This document shows, one piece after another, positions 21,379-33,279 of a stretch of DNA of 33,279 bases. The translations under genes and the position numbers were made by a program. Position 1 is the first letter of the stretch, and each line of letters starts with the position of its first letter. Source of the stretch: Prasinococcaceae sp. CCMP 1430 (lineage: Eukaryota > Plantae > Prasinodermophyta); contig RQSC01001009.1 of NCBI GenBank assembly GCA_013416795.1, positions 4,500 through 37,778 on the forward strand, read 5' to 3'. The notes beneath the pieces are model-generated. The model was not told where the DNA came from and made no database searches. It was given only the letters and a program-made list of their open reading frames with translations.

Positions 21379-22501
21379 TCAGGCAGAGTGGGGACGTGTC
21401 AAGAGCGACGCAAACGTGGGGCCATGACCACCTGATGCATCAGGCATGACCACCCACCCATGCTCTCGCCTCTCCGCCCGCAGCGCCTGGGCGAGAGCCT
21501 GCGGGAGCGGGCGCCGTGCGTCAGCGTGCGACAAGCACCCGCGCCTCACGTAGACGCGCACAGGCGGCAGAGCGCTCGCGCACCTGCGCATCATCGCCGA
21601 GCGTGTCGACAGCGCGCGCCCCGTCACGTCGACGCCGTCTGAGCAGTTTTGTGACCACCCCATCATTCTCCACATCATTGATTGAGCATGTGGAGTACAC
21701 CATTCTGCCGCCCGGCCGCAGCGCATCGAAAGCCGCAAGAGCCATCGACAGCTGCGTCTCCGCGTTTCTCCTTGCTCGGCTGGTGCTCCACTGATCCCTG
21801 CGCACGCGCGCGGCACCGCCCGCCTGCCGCACTACGTGGGCCTCGGACGAGCACGGCGCGTCGACCAGAACAGCGTCGAAGCCCGCGCCTGCGCGCTCGA
21901 AGCCGAAGTCCTCCGGCGAGGGCCGCCACCTCCGCGCGTCGCGTCGCGCGAACCTCACGTCCACGTCCACACCGTGGTCGGCGCGCGGTCCGTGCTCTAG
22001 CAGCACACGCCGCAAGCGCGCGGCGCGTGATGCGCTGACGTCGTTGCACACAAGCAGCTGCTGCTCGATCCCACCCACGCGCTCGTACTGCTCGCCCTGG
22101 GGCGCGCCTGCCCCGCGCTCCGCGAGCATGTGAGCGAGCACCAGCGACTTGCCTCCCGGTGCCGCGCACATGTCCAGAACAGCGCGGTCGGTGGAAGACA
22201 CACCCAGCAGCACCGGCGGGAGCAGCGAGGCGCCGTCGAGCAGATACGACTGCCTGCCGCTCTCGCCGGCGGCGCTGGCGCCCGACGCGGAGGCGGCAGG
22301 CTGCAGCGCGGCGAGCGGCTGCGGCAGTGGCAGCACAGACGCGCGCGCATCGCCCGCCGGACAGGCTGGCCCGCGCCGCGCGAGCTCCACCTTGCGCCCC
22401 GGCGCCTCGAGCGCCTCACGCAGCGCTGGCCAGCGCGCCCCGAACACCGCTGCGAAGTGCTCCTCGAGGCTCACCGCCATCCCCCTTCCCGCTGCCCGCA
22501 T
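21379..22501 (-). CDS. NOL1/NOP2/Sun (NSUN3/NSUN4-like) RNA m5C methyltransferase; exons 22501 (or 22480)-21584, 21498-21379
   Basis: HFAAVFGARWPALREAL, YLLDGASLLP, VLDMCAAPGGKS, FDAVLVDAPCS (motif IV Cys), VYSTCS..ENDGVV (motif VI Cys) and the spliced ending GWVVMPD..GHGPTF. Intron 21499-21583 is GTGCGC..GCTGAC..CGCAG. Confidence 0.9.
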
Positions 22502-22836
22502 CGCTCCTGAGGTGATGGAAGGGGCGCGCCGGCGCGGCGCGCGTGCCCGCGCGCGGCGCCTCCCCGCCAAGCGCGCGAAGGTGCTGGGACGCGCGACCCG
22601 CGCACGCGCGGCGGACACGGCGCGGCGACGGCGCGAGCGTGCACTCGAAGGGCTGTGAGCCTGTGGGGAGGCGCCCCCCCTCATCCCGAGCTCCCTCACA
22701 GGTGCGACCGTGTGGCGCCCACTCGCTCGCGCGCGCGAAAACACCCGCTGCACCACTCGCACGCACCGCGCGCGGCCGAAGCGGTGCCGGGAAAACGCGC
22801 GACTGTCAGAAAGGTGTGATTTGATCATGCGAATTC

Positions 22837-25800
22837 TCAGCCTTCTTTTTGGCCTGCCTCCGTAGCTATCGTCATATTGTGCGGCAGCAGCGCGATGCCA
22901 ACCACGCACTCCTGCCACGAGCTCTGCCTGTTGTGGATGGCCTTCTCCTCGCAGTACTGCGTGAGGTCGCAGCAGAGCGCGTAGCCATCAACAGCGATGA
23001 AGGGCGGCATGTAGCCCGTGCGCGCGCGCCCGACCATCTGGTAGTATGCGAGCCTGCCCACGGAGCTGCTCCCGGGCGAGCCCACGAACATGTCCGCACG
23101 CGCGAGAAGCTCAACGTCGGCGGCGATGGAGAGGCTCGCGTGCTGGTCCAGTGCTTCCACGTCCCGAAACTCCATCCACACGCCATCCTTTCGCGCGAGT
23201 TGCTCGCGAGGGAAATCCAGGTACGTCCACTCGAAGCGCGGGTCCGTGACGAGCTCCTCGAGCGCGGGCACGTCGTCCGTCGCAACGAACACACGGGTGA
23301 CGCCGTAGGCGGCCTGCAATTCGAGCAGCGCGTCGAGGTAGACCTGCACCGAGTAGCACTTGCGCCCATTCTTGCGCAGGCCATCGGCAAACATGTGGTT
23401 GCGCGGGCCGCGCTCGTCTCGCAGGTTGTCCTCGCCCTGGTCGCACGCATCGCCGCGGCGAATGTGCACGGACGCAGTCGGTCCGGCCCCGTCGCCACCA
23501 TCCGCGCTACTCCCGTCGCGACGCGGGATGCGCCGCAGGTGCTGCGCGGCGTACTCCATCACGCGCGCGTTGGGGCGCGCTACCAGCTCAGCAGACATGG
23601 CGGCAGCGGCATACATAGTGAGCTTGCCGTGCTCGGCCTCCCCCGCCGCAATGGCGTCGAACAGCTCCTGCGCGCGCTGTGCGGGCACGTCGAGCGCGCC
23701 CGGAGGTGCAGACAGCAGGGTCCGGTCCTCGTCTCGGACCGGCCGCTCCGGCGGGTCGTAGAAGCAGTAGTACCCCCATCGCTCCCCGTCGTGGGCTTTC
23801 GCAAACTCGAGCGCCTCGGGCGTGTTGCAGTCATCCATGCGCTCTGTCCAGCGCCACTGCTTCTCCTGGGCAGCCGCTGCGGGGACAGCACGCAGGCCGC
23901 GCTCGTGGGTGAGGCCCCACACACCGTGTGCCACAACGCGCAGCACCGTCTTGCCCATGGTGAGCTGCTCCCAGTTCACGATGTCAACGGAGGTACGCTT
24001 CTCGGGCCACCGGCCGCCGGGCACCGTGTCGCGAGCCAGCCTGCGCATCGACGCCCAGAAGCGCGCCTGGCAGCCGGTGCGCCGCTCGGCCCCGAGTTGC
24101 GACAGGAAGTTCTCCGCGGGCGGCAGATACGACAGGGAACTGTCGAGGCGCACTTCGCACGAGTCGCCCGTGTAGCCGTAGGGGCACCGACGCAGCGTCG
24201 TTGCGATGGGCACGTCATCGTCGCGGCACGTCGCACCGTCAGCGCCTTCTGGGATCGGCACGGACAGCGGGAACAAACGCCGACCGTCGGCCTGTTGATC
24301 CCCTGCATCGGTGCCACTGGCACCAGCACCCGCACTCGCTCCAAAGCTTCCTACTGCCTTGGTACTCTCGGCCCATGCCGGCCTCAACTGGTCGGCGGCG
24401 CCGTCGCCCTCCAGCTGCAGGTCGATGTGGTCCTCATGCAAGTTGAGGTTGTACCAGATGGCGAACTCAGAGAGCGCCGAGGAGCTCTTGAGCAGGAAGT
24501 CGCAATGAGATAGAACAAGCGCATCCACGAGCGCCTCGGCCGCTTTCGCCCGGGCGCCGGCGGCCGTGCCCAACACTCTCCGCCAGTCAACGTCTTTCTC
24601 GTCAGTGGAAGCGCCCTCCCGCAGGTGCATAGGAGTGTGCTCCTCGCGCTCACCGACGTTCGCGATGTTGGCCGACCCCACGGCGGCAATGAACTCACGG
24701 TACATGCTCGGGTCATCAGTCGCCACAAAGACCTTGGAGCCAGGGTGGGCGTTGAGGTACTTGGTCGCGAGCTCAGCAAAGGGCAGCACCTCCACCCGGG
24801 GATGCACGGTCTTGTCGGTGCCGCGCAGGTGCACTCCGAGCAGCTTCGCCCCCCGGTTTGCCTTGGTATCCACGCGCTCATACATCGCACGCACGCGCTG
24901 AGAGACGACCTCCAGCACCTCCGGACGAGGGCGGAGCCACTGGTGAACCAAGCGGTTGGCAAGTGCTCTCACACGAAGGCGATGCGCAGCGTCGTACGAG
25001 TGAAAGTCAAAGTACGCCGAAACAGGCGGCGAGAGCTCTCCATAGCTGTACAGGTCCATGACGTGCACCACTCGCACCTCGCGCACAGGAGCAATCACGC
25101 CACCGACAGCAACGGTCTCGTCGCCTAGACGGTACGTGCTGACGGGCTCGAAGAGATACTCCCACACCGATGGGCCGACGGCAGCCGAGTGATACGCGTT
25201 TGGGCCCACGTCGCAAGAATCGTGTGGAGCCCAGGCAAAGGCACCGAGGTGCACCGCGGGAACGTATCCCTTGGCCGCAGCGAAGCGCAGCTGGTTGAGC
25301 ACGCGCTCAATCTGTGCAAAGAGCCCATGGTTCGTGTGGTCGCTCACCGAGAGCAACACAGTCACCGGCTTGGCTTTCGGGGATGCAGGCGGCGCTCCGA
25401 TGTCGTGCTGGTCGCGGCGCAAGACTTGTTGACCCCCTCGCGCGTCGCACTGTAGCACGTTGTACGGGGCGTTCGGCGCCTCTGCAGGGCAGCGCGCGCA
25501 CTCCACGCTGGTCGCGGCGGCGAAGGCCTCGCGTGCGTTGCCTCTATAGCCGTCGCACAGCGCTAGAGGGGCACCCATGGCATCGACCGCGGCGTCCGGG
25601 GCGAGCTTGTTCACCATGCCCTCGTGTGGGCGCTCCGATGTCAGCGGATCCACACGATACCACACACACGAGCCTTCGCGCACGGCATCTGCCAACATGC
25701 GCGCTTCAGGCCGGGTGCGCGCGAACGAATCGGCGGCCGACATCTCAGCGGCCGACCTGACGCGATTGGCTATGTTTGACACGATGGGGCCAAAGGTGTC

Positions 25801-28800
25801 GGCACCTTCCCTGTCCTCGTGCTCGAGGCAGCGGCGAGGCCACAGCGAGCGCCAGAGCAGCGAGGGGCGCACGTGGCTCAGTAGCGCTCTGCGTGCGGCA
25901 CCGAGCTCGAGCTGGAGAAGGAGGAGGAAGGCAAAAGAGGGGGGTGGGGCAGCGGCGGAACGAGAGTGTGTCATGAACATGCGAGGGTCAGCCGCACGGC
26001 GCTTGGGCGCGCTTGCACGGCAGACAATCGGAATGCGCGGGCGACTTCCATGATCCAGTGAATTCGCACCTTGGTGTACGTGTCCATCACCGCCTCCAGC
26101 CACCGCACTGACGGCGGCGGCAAACGCACTGACGACGCACCCCACTGCAGCGAGGGGCGTAACGACTGATCGGCGACGAGGAACTTGGTGAAGACAGGCA
26201 GGCATCCAACTGCCGCAGATGGCACATCTCTCTGACCGTAGTTGCCCGTCTTGCCCAGCGGCACCATACAGAAGTCACTCTTCGACATCTCCGTCAGGGA
26301 GTCTATTGGCTCAGAGACCTCCCACTTGTGCACCATGCTGAGCTCCTTCTCCGTCTGCACCATTTTGAAGCCCGTCTTGTTGCGCAGGTGCATGTACGCT
26401 TCGTACCTGCTGGGCTCAATGTTGGCCTTGGTGTTGATTGCCCCTGAGAAGAACATGCGATTGGTCCTCGGAGCGCCCTCGAAGTATTCGTTTTGCGCCT
26501 CCATGTCCAGCTCAAGCTTTGGCAGCTTGCGCAAACACGGAATGCCCTCTTGCATCGCATGCTTCTCGGCACTGTACGGATTGACGCCGTCCTGGACTCC
26601 CACGAAAGCTGGCACCATCATGTCCACGCCTGGCCAGTACAGGACCCTGGCAACGGCACGATACGGCACGTCGCAAAAAACATATCATGCGCGTGTCAGT
26701 CGCTCGGCAAACACACGTGCACACTCACCCCCACACAGCCTCGTGCTCTGCTGGCAGCAGTCTACGCTGCACTCAGCGCCGCACGCACCTCGGATCGAAG
26801 GTCTGGTCGGGTTGGAACGGCATGAGGTGGTCCGCGACGCCCGACAGCTGGAGCGAGCCGAACGGGCGATACGGGCTCAGTGGATGCAACTCGTCCCAGC
26901 GCTCGGCCTCGGTCTCTCTGAGGCGTCCAGATTCGACGTCCAACCTGTGCGCCGCCGCGATCTTGTGCGCCCGCCATGGCAAGGTATCCGTCCCGAACCA
27001 CATGTGCATGGAAGATCGCCAGATGGACGACCAGCCGTCCTCGTTGGGCGTGAGGATGTAGTGATTTGGCGGTGCGCGCGGGGCGTACACATCGCCCGCA
27101 TGCGAGCTGTTGTTCGCTCGCGCCGCATCGACGTACGCGTTCCAGTGGGGGAATTCTGAGCGCACCCAGCGCATCGCGGGCAAAACGGTGTTTTCCTCTG
27201 TACAGCCGTACACCCAGAATGCCTGCGCCTTGGCCGGGTCGGCCACCACATACTTGCTGCGCATCAGGCGTTCGCCCAGGCGTTCGGGCAGCGACCACGA
27301 GTAGCACGCACGGCGCAGCAGAGGGGGGATCTCGTATACATATACGGAGAGTCGATGGCCTCCGTCGCCCTCCCGCGCCTCAGGGGGGTGGTTTTCGCTG
27401 AGCATACTGCCGTCGAGCCCGCAGTCGAGCCCCCACCTGCCAGGCGGGCACCGACAGAAACCGTAGCTGCAATAGCCGTGGCCCTGACAGTTGTTGGGGC
27501 ACGCATCCAAGGGTGGCTGGTGCCAGTGTCTGGATTCCAGAAGGTCCCTCCACAGGTCCGGGCCGAGGATATTGCCCGCGCCTCTCAACAGCTTTGCGTG
27601 CTGCACAGCGATGTCGACGCCGCTACGTACGTCCGGAACGGGGTGGTAGCCTTCCGCCTCGCGGTCGGCGATGATCTCAGATTCGACGACGTTGCGCGCG
27701 ACGGGAGATTCGGGGATGACGCACGTGGCCTCAGTGAAGCCATCGCGCGCGAGCATCGCGGAGAAACATCGGCACTCATATCCGAGCGAGGTCGAGCGCG
27801 GCTTCTCGCCGCTTGAATCACTGCGCTCGTCGGTCACGCGCGCGCACCATCCGCCTGAGCCACACCGGCCGTCGCACAGGTCTGCGCGCACGGCTGTGAT
27901 GGCAGCCACGCGCTCGGAGATGCCGCTGGGTGGTGCCGGGAGGCGCGCGAGCAGGTCACGCAGATCTCCCTCCCCCGCTCTGTCCATACCGCCGCCGCGC
28001 ACCCTCACACTCATTCTGCGGTTCACCCATTTGCCGCTCGCGATCGCCGCGTAGTCTTCGACCGAGAGCGCGCCGGGCGGCAGCAGCTCGGGCTGCGAAG
28101 TCGGACCGCCCTTGATCCAGCTCGCGAGCGGGACGTAGCGCAGCGCGGACAAGGGCGGGGAGCCGTCTCGTGAAATGGACGCCACAGTGAGGGTGTCCTC
28201 GCCCGCTGCGTCCACGTAACACAAAACGCCCTGTACCCTCACGAGGTGCGGCTCGATCTCCGGAGGCAGAGGCAAGAAGTACGGCTCGTCGGCACGGCTG
28301 AAGAGGCGCGCCGCCTGGGCAACGCAGGAGCATGGCAGCGCGCCGAGCCAACGTAGCGGCGGATGGTGACCGCCAGGGGCTGGCTCACCAACGCGCCCGT
28401 CCTCGGTGCCGAAGAGCTCCTGCAAGAGCAGGAAATTCACGCGGCCGTCGTTGGGCGACTCGTTGGCCTCCCACATCGCCATGGAAGCCAGCAGCGAGAG
28501 GTTGATGGGCTCGTCGGCGGCGCCTACCCCTGCAGGAGCTTCGCACGCGGGCAGCATGGGGACGTCACACGCGTTCCCACGCCACGGCGGCGAGCACGTG
28601 CACTTGCGGCGCAGTTCATCGCACGTGCCCCGCCCGCTGCACGCCGCGGGGCACGGTGACACATTCATGGCGGGCCCGGTGGGTGCTCGTTTGCGTTCAC
28701 GTTCGTTCTGCCGGTGCTGCCGGTGGTGCGCTTGGGTCTGCTCCTGCTTCCTGGGCGGCGGCAGCAGCCTTCTCGGAGCCGGCGCTGGGCTGCCGTCGCT

Positions 28801-29106
28801 CGTGGTATGATCGCTGCCCAACACGCCGGCAGGCAAGGGCGCTGCGCGGCGCGTGGCATCGAGCGTGGCGAATGCGGGCTGGCCCCGCGCCCGCTCCAGC
28901 TCCCCTACCGCCTTGCCGCTGCCAAGGCCCGCCACCATGACCTTCCCCCTCTCGAAGTGCCATCTCGCCGCCGCCACCGCGGACCCCCCCCCGATGCCGA
29001 GCTTCACGCGCCCAGCCTCGAGCGCCGCGAACAGGCACAGCAGCACCGCGGCCAGCGCGCCGCGCCGCGCGAGACCCCCCTGGTGCCTGCCCCCCTGGCC
29101 AGCCAT
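22837..29106 (-). CDS. Giant multi-domain glycosyltransferase: type II anchor, EGF-like repeats, GT47 (exostosin), GT23/NodZ-like, EGF-like, GT23/FUT8-like; exons 29106-26789, 26646-26070, 25911-22837; ~1989 aa
   Basis: GT47 motifs VYVYEIP, DPAKAQAFWV and FCMVPLG...GCLPV; the GT47 ending LLWRSLW...DTF..I lies in the same ORF as two fucosyltransferase motif sets: GVHLRGTDK/VFVATDD/DALVLSHCDFL and VHIRRGD/VFVATDD/DVELLARADMFVG..SS.VGRLAY. Introns 26647-26788 (phase 2) and 25912-26069 (phase 0) have GTGCG donors, CTGAC branch points and CAG acceptors. Exon lengths 2318+577+3075=5970 nt. Confidence 0.85.
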
Positions 29107-29178
29107 TCCATCGCCGCCCGCGCTGCCCGCGCCGCCGCGCACCCCTCTCCGTTAGGGTATCACCGCCTGCTCCACGCC

Positions 29179-29180
<2 letters not shown>

Positions 29181-29219
<39 letters not shown>
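29181..29219. repeat. Poly-G39 tract in a divergent promoter
   Basis: Homopolymer seen directly; its exact length may be a sequencing artefact. Confidence 0.9.
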
Positions 29220-29223
<4 letters not shown>

Positions 29224-29298
29224 CTGCGAGGGGCGCCCCGCTCGTGCGCGGTCTGGCGCCCCGGGCCTGCGAATTGTGCTGCAGCAGGGACATGCATA

Positions 29299-29337
29299 CT
29301 AAACCCTATTAAAACCCCAAACCCAAACCCGAAACCG
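29299..29337. promoter_or_regulatory. Telo-box CTAAACCCTA followed by degenerate AAACCC repeats in a divergent promoter
   Basis: ctaaacccta ttaaaaccccaaacccaaacccgaaaccg; a second TTAGGGT at 29152-29158. Confidence 0.55.
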
Positions 29338-29525
29338 CTGATGTGCGCCTGATGAGCGCAGCTCACCAGCGTGTCTGATGCGACATGCGGGCGCCACTGC
29401 GCGCGGGCGCAGCGCAGCAGTGGCGCGGGGCGGGCGCCCCCGCTCCCCCCTTGCATCCGGACGGCTCCACCCGCCCCCCCCTCCCCGAACTCGGCAGACA
29501 CGCGTCCGCGTTGACGGCAGCGGCG

Positions 29526-31278
29526 ATGGACGGCGGTGGCGGTGGCGGCGGGGGCCTTGAGGGCGGCGGCGCGGTCGGCGGCGGGGCGAGCCTCGAGGAC
29601 TTCTTCGGTCAGGCCTGCTGCTTCTGCGGCAGCGATGTCAGCGAGGACGACGGCAATGAGGGCAACGCCATCGTGGCGGTTTGCTCGGGGTGTGACATGT
29701 CAGCGGTGCACGCCGAATGCCTGTTCAACAAGGCGAAGGTGGGGGCGCGCGACCGCAGCCACTGATGTGCGCACGCTCGAGCACATTGCCTCGGCTACGT
29801 CGCTGACGCGCATCGAACCCGCCCCACGCTTGCCACTCGCTGCTGTCTTTCGCTCGCATTCGTTGCACCAGGGGGCTGTGACCAACTCGATGAAGATGAA
29901 AAAGCTTGAGGCCTGTTTCAAGGCGCAGGCGCGTGGCTCGACGCTGCGCTGGTTCATCCGGACGTACAAGACGCCGTGCTGCAAGGCGCTGGCGCCCGCG
30001 CTGGGTGGCCTCACCGACGCGCAGCGATCATCATGCGACCCGACGCGCGTGTGCTCAGGCCACCTGATTGCCATCGAAAATCTGCGAGACGTGCTCAAGA
30101 AACGGGAGCTTATGTCTGCCGCGAGCGGCAGCGGCGCAACTTCACAGTCGGCACAGCCGGTGCCCCGTCCCCACGTGCGCAGCGGCCTCAAGACCAAGTC
30201 GGCGATAGCGCGTGCCGACCCTGCCGTGCTGGCGAACGCCGCGCGTCAGCGCGAGGCTGCGAAGCGGCAGAGCGACGCGCTGGATGCACAGCGGCGGCGT
30301 GCCGGAGCTCGCCAGCGTGCCGAGCAGATGGTGCCAACTGCAATTGGGGGCGTTGGGCTCGCGGAGTCAATGACCGCGGCTGTTGGGCACACGCTCGCCG
30401 ACGATCAGCGAGCTGCGCACAAGCGCACCAAAATTAACACGAACGCGCGCAAGCATGCGAAGCGTGCAGCAAAGCGCGCCGAGGCGCGCGCGATCAAGGA
30501 GCGAGAGGAGCGCGTGGAAGAGGCAACGCGACAAGCGATCGAGGCGAGCATGGCAGAGCAGAGCACGCGAGAGGAGGAAGAGATGCATGCCGCACTTGCG
30601 GAGGTCGAGGCGGCCAAGCGTGAGGCGCAGGCCCTCGGATACGAGGTTGTCACGTCCGTCATGCGCGCCGTGGGCGCCTGCAAAATCGGGGCGCACGTGC
30701 GCGCCCTTGGGCTCACAAGTATGGGGTACAGCACGGAGCGCTGCTGCGCCGCACTGCAGGCCTGTGGCCTGGAGGCCGACGTGAGCGCCCTCGCGACATG
30801 GCTGATCGACGTGCCCGAGGAGGAGGGGCCTGGCGTCTCAGTCGATGTGCTCGCGGGCGATGTCGACGTGAGTGAGGAGATGATGGAACTGCAGGACTTT
30901 GCCGAGAACATGAACATAGCACGCGAGGTTGTGGACGCGGCGGTCGTGGCAGCCTACGGGGACATCAGCGTCGCGATGCAGGGCATCTGCCAGCGACTCT
31001 TTGCCGCGGAGGACGACCTCGTTGAGGAGCCGTCGACGGACAACTTTTACTACGAGCAAGGCGACTACGAAGGTGGCGGTGGAAGTGGCGAAGAAGGGGA
31101 GGACGGCGATCCCTGGGGCGCACTCAGCGACGCCGCTGAGATGGCCGCCCCGGCTTCTGATTGGGGTGCTGCGCCCGCCTCGGATACGCCACAGGCATCA
31201 AGGTGGGGGGCCTCGCCCGCGGTTGAAGCCGATGTGCTGGGCGACATGGTCAGCAGGTTGCCAGCCGATCTCATCTGA
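29526..31278 (+). CDS. Protein with an N-terminal Cys/His zinc-finger-like region, basic coiled coil, UIM-like helices and two UBA-like domains; exons 29526-29738, 29872-31278; ~539 aa
   Basis: CxxC..CxxC...HxxC in exon 1; EEATRQAIEASM (UIM-like); LTSMGYS..C..AL and VDVSEE....VDAAVVAAYGDI (UBA-like). Intron 29739-29871 is GT..GCTGAC..CAG, phase 0. Confidence 0.75.
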
Positions 31279-31391: not shown

Positions 31392-32792
31392 TCAACGCGC
31401 GTCTGGGCTTCGTAGGCGCTTCAGCAGACCAGCGACGCCGGTAGGGCCCTGAAATCGCCGCTTGCCTGGCTGCTTCCGCGCGGTCTTGGTTTTGGGAGCG
31501 GGTGCTGCAGCGGTCTGCGGCAGCGCCACGCCCTCCTCTGCATGAACGCATGGTGACGAATCGAAGCGCTCGGCGTCAGTGGAGCGCAGCTCGCTCAGTC
31601 TGGGCCACCAGGGCCGCGAAGTCGAGGGCCCGTCTGTGTCCACGCTCGTGGTCGCACCGACGACACCGTCAACGCTCTGCGACGCCAACATGGCAGCAGC
31701 GCGGGCGGCACTCAGGGGCTTGGCGACGTTCTCGGCGAACGCGTCCCACGGTGAGCCTGGGGTGACAGCGACAGCGAAGGCCGTAGCACAGACTTGCGCG
31801 CGCGGGAGCGCAGCTTCGCGATTAGGCTCGAACGCCAGCGCATCGGCACCAAGTGCAGTCCCCTCCCCTTGGACCGTCACCGGCGTTGCCGCTGCGACCT
31901 CAGCTACGACTTGGTGCGTGTAGCTGCGCACGGCAGAGTCGAGCGCACTGATCTGCTTTCCGCCCTCGTGAACGGCCAGGGCCGGCGCCGGCGTCGAGGC
32001 ATCGCGAGCGAGTGCTGCCGCCACGGTCGCCGCCCGCGCGTCCGCGCTTTGCGGGGATGCGTCCTCCGTGGCCTTCATGGCATCGAGCTTTTCGAGTCGC
32101 TTTTTCAGGCGCTTCGCCCGCTTGCGCTGCGTGCTGCGGCTCGGCGCCCCCGCTGCTCGTCGCGCCCCTGGTTGCTGCTGCTGCGGCTGGGGATGCTGCT
32201 GCATTGGCATTTGCTGCTGCTGCTGCTGCTGCTCTTGCTGCTGCTGCTGCTGCTGCTCTTGCTGCGGCTGCGGCGCGGGCTGCTGCCGCTCCATCGCAGC
32301 GGCACCGTTCCGCGCCTGCTGCATTCCCTCGGCAGCGGGCGAACGGCCATCCCTCAGCGCATGCGCGTCGCGCGGGTGACGCGCTCTGAACGCCGCCTCG
32401 TCCAGGGCCGCTGCCAGCTGCGCTGCCTCTCCCTCGAGCGTCCTGACGTAGAGGACGTCGCCCTCTCGCAGAGCACGTATCGGCGTGCCGTGCGCGACCA
32501 CCGTGCGGTCGCAGCCCGGCGCACCTGGGTTGTCGCTCGGCCGCAGATGCACGCTCGCGAGCCCCTCGGCGCCCACAGCCTGCGCGGCGAGCGCGTGCAC
32601 CGTGGGCGGCCTGCCCGCCGCGCGCAGCCCGCGAGGCCGCAGCGGCACACTCGGCCTTCCCACTTTCCCCCCTTCCCCCCCTCCTCCTCCGCCATCCTCG
32701 CCACCACCGCGCGCTGTGGCGGGCGCCGCGGCCGCTCCGCGCTCGCCCGCGCTCCCGAGGACCGACACCGCAACCTGAACCTGAGCCGCCAT
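31392..32792 (-). CDS. Coilin-like protein with poly-Q tract, ~466 aa
   Basis: The N-terminal domain ends in PIRALREGDVLYV, similar to the coilin NTD LR..D.I.V. PSRSTQRKRAKR resembles plant coilin PSRSARRKKAKR, and SPW and a basic C-terminal GP motif are present. No clear Tudor-like domain is seen. Confidence 0.55.
   Translation of the reverse strand: MAAQVQVAVSVLGSAGERGAAAAPATARGGGEDGGGGGGEGGKVGRPSVPLRPRGLRAAGRPPTVHALAAQAVGAEGLASVHLRPSDNPGAPGCDRTVVAHGTPIRALREGDVLYVRTLEGEAAQLAAALDEAAFRARHPRDAHALRDGRSPAAEGMQQARNGAAAMERQQPAPQPQQEQQQQQQQEQQQQQQQMPMQQHPQPQQQQPGARRAAGAPSRSTQRKRAKRLKKRLEKLDAMKATEDASPQSADARAATVAAALARDASTPAPALAVHEGGKQISALDSAVRSYTHQVVAEVAAATPVTVQGEGTALGADALAFEPNREAALPRAQVCATAFAVAVTPGSPWDAFAENVAKPLSAARAAAMLASQSVDGVVGATTSVDTDGPSTSRPWWPRLSELRSTDAERFDSSPCVHAEEGVALPQTAAAPAPKTKTARKQPGKRRFQGPTGVAGLLKRLRSPDAR
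32174..32286 (-). repeat. Imperfect CAG trinucleotide repeat encoding poly-Gln
   Basis: (ctg)n runs on the + strand; QQEQQQQQQQEQQQQQQQ in the translation. Confidence 0.95.
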
Positions 32793-32793
32793 G

Positions 32794-32802
32794 TTAGGGT
32801 TT
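32794..32802 (-). promoter_or_regulatory. Canonical telo-box AAACCCTAA one base upstream of the coilin-like ATG
   Basis: The minus strand reads AAACCCTAAC-ATG. Confidence 0.6.
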
Positions 32803-33279
32803 TGTACAGGGTATCCGTGTTGGGGGTTTTCGGCCACCTTCTCGCCTGCCGCACAGTAAGATTCTAACCGTATTGTTGATATCGATCTCGCATTGAAAAA
32901 GTGACCTTGAGGTGACTTCGATGGGAATGAGCAGATGTGGATGAAAAGGGGTGCGAACGAGCACAGGAGGCGGCTGGCCGCGGCGGCCCGCAGCCGCTCG
33001 CGCCGAAACCGCAGCCGAAACCGAAACCGCGAGCGCGAGCGCCGCCTCGTTGGTCGCGAGATGCGCAATCGTACCGGGTCACTTGAAGGCGTGTGTACCG
33101 GGGACGAAAGGGGGATGCGCGCTGATAGACCGTGGATGTGAGGGAGGACCGGGTGGAGCGTGGGGGGCGCCCGCCGCGGACAAAAACGCGGTTGGGCGCG
33201 GCGAAATTGGAGAGGCGCGCGTTGCCGCGGCGCGCGCAGCGGCGGCCGTCTCCGCCGGCGACTCGCCCCTCGCCGCGGC

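Follow-up and report, generated by a model that had tools for sequence, protein, structure and literature searches.

A spliced gene of a marine green alga that joins a GT47 domain and two GT23-like domains in one protein

Can three separate open reading frames (ORFs) on one strand of an algal contig encode a single protein with three glycosyltransferase domains? The question is raised by a stretch of DNA from Prasinococcaceae sp. CCMP 1430 (contig RQSC01001009.1, positions 4,500 to 37,778 of the forward strand). The whole stretch, 33,279 nucleotides (nt) long and about 67% G+C, is referred to here as the window. Pseudoscourfieldia marina had been considered as a source on account of PMC13213038 and was rejected, its genome having only about 57% G+C. 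On its minus strand, the ORF listing gives three ORFs at 26773-29142, 25971-26669 and 22837-26205. A sequence-only reading had proposed that two introns join these ORFs into one gene of about 1989 codons, whose product would carry an exostosin (GT47) domain followed by two tandem GT23-type domains. This central claim is supported by spliced contigs, by two orthologues and by profile and fold matches. The locus is confirmed as a genuine nuclear gene that is transcribed in a marine green alga of high G+C content, with a GT47 domain and two GT23-like domains (A and B) in one protein.

One gene from three reading frames

The introns of this gene have been observed in transcript-derived sequence. 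Thirteen public runs are listed for the stretch, 11 of which contain all or part of it, including transcript-like assemblies from the same organism and marine metatranscriptomes. Four runs (X1-X4) were aligned as Logan contigs to positions 22700-28699; X2 is a marine metatranscriptome, and X2 and X3 represent an environmental strain. In X1 and X4, contigs join 25911 to 26070 and skip 158 nt, which are bordered by CT..AC on the plus strand and thus by GT..AG on the minus strand. A second joint, from 26645 to 26788 with 142 nt skipped, is present in X1. X1 and X4, which come from the organism of the window itself, contain spliced forms and are therefore derived from complementary DNA. One contig passes both introns into exon 3, and the loose contig ends in X2 and X4 are identical in sequence to the neighbouring exon. 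Between 22926 and 27875, the contigs of the four runs contain no further joint. Contig cover is nearly continuous over 22837-27875 and thin above 27900, and a single contig is collinear with the genome across 24030-25380.

The two joints place intron 1 at 26647..26788 (142 nt; X1) and intron 2 at 25912..26069 (158 nt; X1 and X4), where the sequence-only reading had put them. Both are GT..AG introns of the minus strand, which carries all features of the gene, and the acceptor of intron 2 is rich in pyrimidines. Inspection of the sequence found AG/GTGCG donors and AG acceptors exactly at both predicted intron borders. The AG/GTGCG donor context is common to the two introns (26782-26790 and 26063-26071, minus strand).

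The spliced coding sequence consists of exons 29106-26789, 26646-26070 and 25911-22840 plus the stop codon, and the sum of 772 + 1 + 192 + 1024 gives the expected 1989 codons. Coding exon 1 (26789..29106) holds 772 codons and 2 bases; its ORF begins at a putative start ATG at 29106, and its 3' end is set by the RNA joint. It encodes a predicted signal anchor, a stem, two EGF-like modules, a conserved Cys-containing region and the N-terminal half of the GT47 domain. Coding exon 2 (26070..26646; 1 base and 192 codons) encodes the C-terminal half of GT47 with SDFCMVPLGKTGNYGQRDV...GCLPVF. Coding exon 3 (22837..25911; 1024 codons and the stop) encodes, in order, the GT47 tail, a linker, domain A, a second linker and domain B. 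Evidence for exon 3 comes from its uninterrupted ORF, collinear RNA contigs, an excess of synonymous changes and the G+C content at third codon positions (GC3). The intron phases match, as had been claimed: exon 1 leaves two bases of a codon to which exon 2 gives the third, and exon 2 passes to exon 3 in phase 0. Retention of either intron results in in-frame stops. The spliced frame has no stop codon anywhere between its ends, including the region between the GT47 and GT23 parts, where such a stop had been named as an observation that would speak against a single gene.

Is the frame coding throughout? The environmental strain (X2/X3) differs from the window at 26 listed positions, which are spread over exon 2, the two linkers and the two C-terminal domains. 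Read in the frame of the gene, 15 of these differences are synonymous and 11 non-synonymous; the corresponding ratios are 4:22 and 3:23 in the two alternative frames. In addition, GC3 lies at 0.72-0.88 and exceeds the G+C content at first and second codon positions in every 300-nt block of all exons, and does not do so in the introns. The chance of 1024 stop-free codons at this base composition is about 6e-11. The frame is coding throughout. At the end of the gene, an X2 contig (from a strain 95-99% similar) matches up to position 22837 and no further, which is precisely where the stop codon ends. This appears to fit a conserved coding sequence followed by a diverged 3' untranslated region.

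Independent evidence for the fusion was provided by orthologues. An exhaustive HMMER search with exon 3 returned 841 relatives. The best match is P0001 (1853 amino acids), which covers both C-terminal domains. Like its identical copy P0152, P0001 (L001:8001-13562) belongs to a 21.6-kilobase metagenome scaffold, and each is one uninterrupted ORF. Neighbouring genes on the P0001 scaffold are eukaryotic (Sec6, Mpv17/PMP22 and RCC1). Across a scaffold gap, the open frame of P0001 can be followed upstream for another 172 codons (L001:7485-8000), which encode the first EGF-like module, so that the truncation of P0001 is due to assembly alone. A second orthologue, P0151 (2108 amino acids, L002:587-6913), was found by a search with full-length P0001 and is a single ORF on a 9.8-kilobase contig. 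In that search, candidates had 1019-3243 amino acids and the 8000 sharing most words were scored; among these 8000, only P0001 and P0151 were returned.

P0151 is colinear with the window. Residues 141-764 of exon 1 correspond to its residues 183-827, residues 5-185 of exon 2 correspond to 842-1051, and exon 3 aligns as well. In the alignment, the exon junctions of the window fall within continuous sequence of the intron-less orthologues, which validates both splice joins at the protein level. The three lineages (G+C 54%, 67% and 67%) keep the same order of anchor, EGF-like module, conserved Cys region, EGF-like module, GT47, A and B. Since the orthologues, which come from two other uncultured algae, show this order in single uninterrupted ORFs, the fusion is not an artefact of the gene model. 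Among the proteins examined, a GT47 domain together with the A-B pair was found only in the window's gene, P0001 and P0151.

Could two or three adjacent genes nevertheless have been read as one, or could the assembly contain a mis-join? Some observations do weigh against a single gene. Each Logan contig covers just a fragment of the gene, so the contigs cannot prove one molecule covering all three domains, and the listed contig pieces leave an 18-nt hole at 25686-25703. Such an artefact would have to be reconciled with a stop-free spliced frame, with the contig that crosses both introns into exon 3, and with three DNA runs that contain all sampled words of the stretch. It would also have to produce the same domain order in one ORF in two independent metagenome orthologues, and a frame-specific synonymous excess that extends over the linkers. 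An artefact is extremely improbable and is practically excluded.

One further database entry concerns the same gene. P0002 (412 amino acids, 98% identical) is a prokaryote-style gene call from a near-identical strain that joins sequence of exon 2, part of intron 2 and the adjoining portion of exon 3 in one frame. It illustrates how this gene is fragmented in public protein sets.

Two GT23-like domains in tandem

What are the two domains at the C-terminal end of the protein? Domain A is encoded at 24406..25374 and domain B at 22840..24150. The sequence-only reading had called the former NodZ-like and the latter FUT8-like; in profiles and models, both match FUT8 best, and domain A also matches NodZ. 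Hidden Markov models gave a divided answer: the window's own domains stay below Pfam thresholds, and the profiles built from their families match FUT8 and NodZ. A 46-sequence profile of domain A (A1) matched FUT8 in the PDB at E 3e-17, NodZ at E 1.5e-14 and the POFUTs at 0.012. A 38-sequence profile of domain B (A2) matched FUT8 at E 6e-8, with POFUT1 next at 0.037. The orthologue P0001 reaches 30.7 bits with FUT8_N_cat, which is above the cut-off of 27.6. Language-model neighbours of domain A belong to FUT8_N_cat, NodZ, O-FucT and XG_FTase clusters.

Three GT-B folds had been anticipated; AlphaFold was run on A and B, and both models are closest to FUT8. The model of domain A has a predicted local distance difference test score (pLDDT) above 90 over most of its catalytic part. 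Foldseek matched it to FUT8 at E 1.5e-10, and VIA gave Z 18.3 for FUT8 (250 residues, root-mean-square deviation (rmsd) 3.6), 15.4 for NodZ over its whole length, 13-14 for POFUT and 12 for AtFUT1. For domain B (pLDDT 83.4, predicted template modelling score 0.89), the top 26 Foldseek matches are all FUT8. VIA gave Z 18.6 for FUT8 (278 residues, rmsd 4.1), 11.6 for AtFUT1, 10.6 for NodZ and about 10 for the POFUTs. The homology and fold of both domains have thus been shown to be those of GT23.

The donor-site residues of FUT8 include His363, Arg365, Asp368, Lys369 and Ser469 (PMC11468063). Comparison with these residues rests on the profile alignments, as do all residue-level statements on A and B. 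In domain A, motif I is GVHLRGTDK at 24811-24837, where it had been reported, motif II is FVATDD at about 24712-24729 and motif III is LVDAL...SSSALSEF. All of the FUT8 positions (His363, Arg365, Asp368 and Lys369; Asp409/410; Asp453 and Ser469) are aligned with these motifs, and within GVHLRGTDK the residues H, R, G, D and K show at least 90% conservation in the A1 alignment. Motif I of domain B is VHIRRGDACD at about 23440-23469, and its core VHIRRGD was found at 23449-23469 as reported. It keeps His, Arg, Gly and Asp, and its R, G and D are invariant or nearly so in the family. Domain B also has the ATDD of motif II (FVATDD, about 23272-23289) and the Asp and Ser of motif III (AADVE...GSSSVGRLAY). 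By these alignments, the GDP-sugar motifs I-III are retained in domain A and, apart from the Lys369 position, in domain B.

Several results weigh against a simple reading of A and B as fucosyltransferases of the FUT8 kind. Domain A alone has no Pfam match, domain B scores only 13.8 bits with FUT8_N_cat and so stays below the gathering score, and single-sequence searches of the PDB with the two domains gave nothing useful. At the position of FUT8 Glu373, domain A has a Pro (K-T-V-H-P in the window) and domain B likewise has no Glu. Domain B has Ala-Cys in place of Lys369-Val370, and this Cys is invariant in its family. Because of these differences at Glu373 and Lys369, the FUT8 mechanism cannot simply be transferred to A and B, and one of the two domains could be inactive. 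A shifted catalytic base in domain A is possible.

Is one of the domains a pseudo-enzyme? The candidate would most likely be domain B, which could keep the fold and the ability to bind a nucleotide-sugar or a glycan and serve as a scaffold, an acceptor-binding module or a chaperoning module. Besides the substitutions just described and its weak Pfam score, the B family has invariant Cys and Arg residues of its own outside the GT23 motifs. A precedent exists in EXT2, whose GT47 domain is catalytically silent within the EXT1-EXT2 complex. Yet motifs I (H-x-R-x-G-D), II (ATDD) and III (D...S) are kept in B and largely so across the 38 family members, the stand-alone B-type proteins P0011 and P0012 fit an autonomous enzyme, and synonymous changes dominate in B as they do in A. 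Loss of activity in one domain is considered unlikely, and the reading of A and B as two active GT23-like transferases is retained.

A different question is whether the two domains carry out the chemistry of FUT8 and NodZ at all. A and/or B might use another GDP-sugar, for example GDP-L-galactose, or might O-fucosylate protein modules (EGF-like or TSR-like) in the manner of POFUT1/2. Next in the structural ranking come POFUT1/2 and AtFUT1 (Z 10-14), O-FucT clusters appear among the language-model neighbours, and EGF- or TSP-like modules are present in the protein itself and in a neighbouring gene. Against this, FUT8 and NodZ are ahead of the POFUTs by over 10 orders of magnitude in the profile searches with A and by about 6 in those with B, and they also lead in Z (18 versus 10-14). 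Such a departure in donor or acceptor is judged decidedly unlikely, and an alpha-fucosyltransferase type of reaction remains the preferred reading for both domains.

The modules of A and B extend beyond their catalytic parts. Upstream of domain A lies a Cys-containing N-terminal extension (25375..25683), from which P0003, P0006, P0007 and P0010 align; it is conserved in stand-alone relatives and poorly modelled (pLDDT below 50). Next to domain B, a conserved RRCPYGYTGDSCEV segment (24151..24215) is kept in P0001, and the stand-alone proteins P0011 and P0012 align from here. The CPYGYTGDSC motif had been taken for an EGF-like fragment. This assignment is not upheld: the exon 3 ORF has no EGF match in Pfam, and the segment forms instead the conserved N-terminal edge of the domain-B family.

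How widespread is the pairing of these domains? A and B belong to different GT23-like subfamilies. The A-then-B order without GT47 occurs in the metagenomic proteins P0039, P0060, P0082 and P0107; no GT47 domain was found in the scanned members of this group or of the domain-A fusions named below. The pair of A and B therefore resembles an older cassette, with GT47 as an addition to it. Relatives above the Pfam cut-offs for FUT8_N_cat and/or NodZ include P0024, P0030, P0039 and P0060, and one relative comes from a haptophyte. Other domain-A relatives are fused to a sulfotransferase (PF03567; P0071), to a GT10 fucosyltransferase (P0074), to GH16 (P0094) or to a GT1-like domain with WSC (P0065). 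This GT23 subfamily behaves as a module from which glycan proteins with several enzymes are built, and its fusions can guide the search for algal glycan pathways.

The GT47 domain and the N-terminal region

The assignment of the first catalytic domain had to be made from more distant matches. The N-terminal half of GT47 (LSVYVYEIPPLLRRAC...) is encoded at 26789..27357, corresponds to positions 3-111 of Pfam PF03016 and aligns with the orthologues. PF03016 was scored on the exon pieces separately. The scores themselves weigh against the assignment: the exon 1 piece reached 14.7 bits (E 0.019) and the exon 2 piece, covering positions 159-286 of 293, reached 30.7 bits (E 2.6e-7), both short of the cut-off of 33.4. 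The GT47 pieces of the orthologues are equally weak (13.6-14.5 bits). The GT47 region of one orthologue matches P0159, P0160 and P0161 at E 3.6e-36 to 5e-24, and P0159 and P0161 exceed the PF03016 cut-off with 41.4 and 41.3 bits, respectively. Weak EGF matches are present in two of these three GT47 relatives.

A similar result was obtained with structures. A profile of the three orthologues alone (A3) found no exostosin match in the PDB. When the three GT47 relatives were added (A4), the best PDB match was EXT2, which is marginal at E 0.033. A4 aligns SDFCMVP.GK.G..G.R...GC.P, an FCxxPxG...GCxPV motif, with EXT2 residues 262-349. On these grounds, the domain is accepted as a putative divergent GT47. 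Its conserved C-terminal segment had been placed in exon 3. This view requires correction: the Pfam profile runs almost to its end in exon 2 (to position 286 of 293), so the exon 3 segment is a conserved C-terminal tail.

How would the protein be located in the cell? A Kyte-Doolittle scan identified a hydrophobic segment at 29005..29061 (residues about 16-34, ...GALAAVLLCLFAALEAG...), with Arg residues before it. No other 19-residue window above 1.5 was found in any of the exons. An equivalent N-terminal hydrophobic segment is present in P0151. The segment is predicted to act as a type II signal anchor or as a signal peptide, which would place the catalytic domains in the lumen. A single N-terminal hydrophobic segment fits the type II topology that had been suggested.

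Two EGF-like modules follow. Exon 1 scores 28.9 bits with EGF_Teneurin (Pfam cut-off 24.3) in two stretches, and its membership of the EGF group is thereby above threshold. Pfam coordinates were given for the best stretch only, which is module 1 (CPAACSGRG...NACDVP; 28558..28653, ORF residues 164-195). Module 2 (CPNNCQGHGYCSYGFCRCPPGRWGLDC; 27418..27501) lies directly before GT47 and is taken as the second stretch; it is kept in P0001 and P0151.

The position of the anchor leads to another question. Does the protein act as one chain, or is it a precursor that is cut in its linkers to release separate GT47 and GT23 enzymes, with the fusion serving as a device for co-expression and co-targeting? 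The two linkers (exon 3 residues about 50-180 and 500-590) are long, of low complexity and poorly modelled, and A and B exist as stand-alone proteins elsewhere. After cleavage, the membrane anchor would stay with the first domain only, and this point counts in both directions, since the released A and B would be anchorless and secreted. Linker length and order are furthermore conserved in the three orthologues. Processing of this kind is regarded as very unlikely, and a protein that functions as one chain is preferred.

The surroundings of the gene do not add to this picture. Other genes in the window encode Serinc, an SMP-domain protein, FAM91, a MORN/filamin protein, a BT1 transporter and an RsmB/F-type methyltransferase. 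These neighbours are unrelated housekeeping genes whose context gives no clue to a pathway, which is a further point against a functional assignment. In the downstream ORF at 21521-22918 (minus strand), residues 337-431 form the RsmB/F-type RNA methyltransferase domain. As extended mechanically at its 5' end, this ORF shares 82 nt with the end of the glycosyltransferase gene, read in a different frame, and its true start probably lies further downstream. The adjoining ORFs at 29536-31278 (plus strand, 580 amino acids) and 31392-33068 (minus strand, 558 amino acids) have no Pfam match at E <= 0.001. Three antisense ORFs of up to 554 amino acids on the plus strand (22849-24513, 26242-27159 and 28714-29352) have no Pfam match either. 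They were rejected as genes and are taken as shadows of GC-rich coding DNA.

A possible glycan assembly chain and its known counterparts

What could a protein of this architecture do? GT47 enzymes are inverting GT-B enzymes that use UDP-sugars, and GT23 enzymes are inverting enzymes that transfer fucose from GDP-fucose to form an alpha-fucoside. The product of the gene would be a secretory-pathway protein of 1989 residues with one N-terminal membrane anchor and a lumenal body. This body would comprise a stem, a conserved Cys region with an EGF-like module on either side, the divergent GT47 domain, A and B. By analogy with what is known of GT47 and GT23 enzymes, it may reside as a type II protein in the Golgi lumen. 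There, the GT47 domain could add one sugar from a UDP-donor. To that same glycan, A and B could each transfer L-fucose in alpha linkage, or the sugar of a closely related GDP-donor, the two acting at different positions. The fusion would hold three consecutive steps of one glycan together and would enforce their stoichiometry and proximity. Taken as a whole, a three-domain lumenal protein that performs a GT47 step and two fucosylations on one glycan is the best explanation of the observations, and we consider it probable.

A more far-reaching proposal concerns the product. The GT47-A-B chain might by itself synthesise an extracellular glycan of marine picoalgae that is rich in fucose, with GT47 adding a uronic-acid or galactose residue and the GT23-like pair adding fucose in two linkages. 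Candidate products include, for example, the repeating unit of a fucose-containing and possibly sulfated polysaccharide, or a surface-coat or scale glycan. This proposal is unlikely on present evidence. If it holds, divergent algal GT23 domains would be true polysaccharide fucosyltransferases, a role that has so far only been hypothesised for brown-algal fucan. If the domains are instead ordinary glycoprotein-trimming enzymes, the result is a correct and unremarkable annotation of a long gene that prokaryote-style callers split.

Why does this gene matter? The fucose-containing extracellular glycans of marine algae form a large and persistent carbon pool. To our knowledge, no fucosyltransferase that builds these glycans in marine algae has been identified. 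A conserved and expressed fusion indicates which three activities act together. It also offers an experimental handle in the form of three soluble domains that can be assayed singly and in combination.

The protein can be compared with several known systems. The closest are human and mouse FUT8 and Bradyrhizobium NodZ, alpha-1,6-fucosyltransferases of CAZy family GT23, which are the best profile and fold matches of both C-terminal domains. The patterns H-x-R-x-x-D (motif I), ATDD (motif II) and D...S (motif III) of their GDP-fucose site are present in A and B. However, identity to these enzymes is only 14-20%, and the window protein has neither an SH3 domain nor the N-terminal coiled coil of FUT8. 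By alignment, the equivalent of FUT8 Glu373 is missing in both domains and that of Lys369 is missing in B. An acceptor such as the N-glycan core or a Nod factor is unlikely.

The heparan-sulfate co-polymerases EXT1 and EXT2 (GT47-GT64) offer a parallel in architecture. They are Golgi type II proteins in which an N-terminal anchor and a GT47 domain are followed by a second glycosyltransferase, as in the window protein. In the latter, the partners of GT47 are GT23-like rather than GT64 and number two, EGF-like modules precede GT47, and the similarity to EXT2 is marginal.

Algal GT23 proteins have been discussed in connection with extracellular glycans. Brown-algal GT23 proteins are discussed as putative fucan synthases (PMC11468063), and for GT23 genes of prasinophytes a part in scale assembly has been suggested (PMC13213038). 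These proteins share with A and B a divergent sequence, a conserved donor site, a non-animal acceptor and a proposed role in fucose-containing extracellular glycans, and they are single-domain as described there (PMC11468063; PMC13213038). The portions of the algal glycosyltransferase literature at hand treat GT23 and GT47 as separate families and present the fucan or scale role of GT23 without biochemical proof (PMC11468063; PMC13213038; PMC3797821). In these same portions, no description of a GT47-GT23-GT23 fusion was found, and neither joining of GT23 to GT47 nor a GT23 tandem is mentioned for the brown-algal and prasinophyte proteins.

Is an enzyme chain of this kind then without precedent? 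The sequence-only reading had known of no characterised enzyme with this architecture. For the architecture itself this holds in the literature just described, where no such paper was found; single chains with three glycosyltransferase activities are known. In the chlorovirus PBCV-1, a single protein, A111/114R, combines three glycosyltransferase activities, one of them that of a fucosyltransferase (PMC7826918). Judged by that description, it resembles the window protein as a single chain whose three glycosyltransferase domains act on one glycan, and it too belongs to the world of green algae and their viruses. It differs in the families and order of its domains, acts in the cytoplasm as a viral enzyme and has no signal anchor. 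The principle of an assembly line in one chain is thus not new, since chains with several glycosyltransferases are known from EXT1/2 and from PBCV-1 A111/114R. Compared with FUT8 and NodZ, the window protein is set apart by two such domains in tandem behind a GT47 domain.

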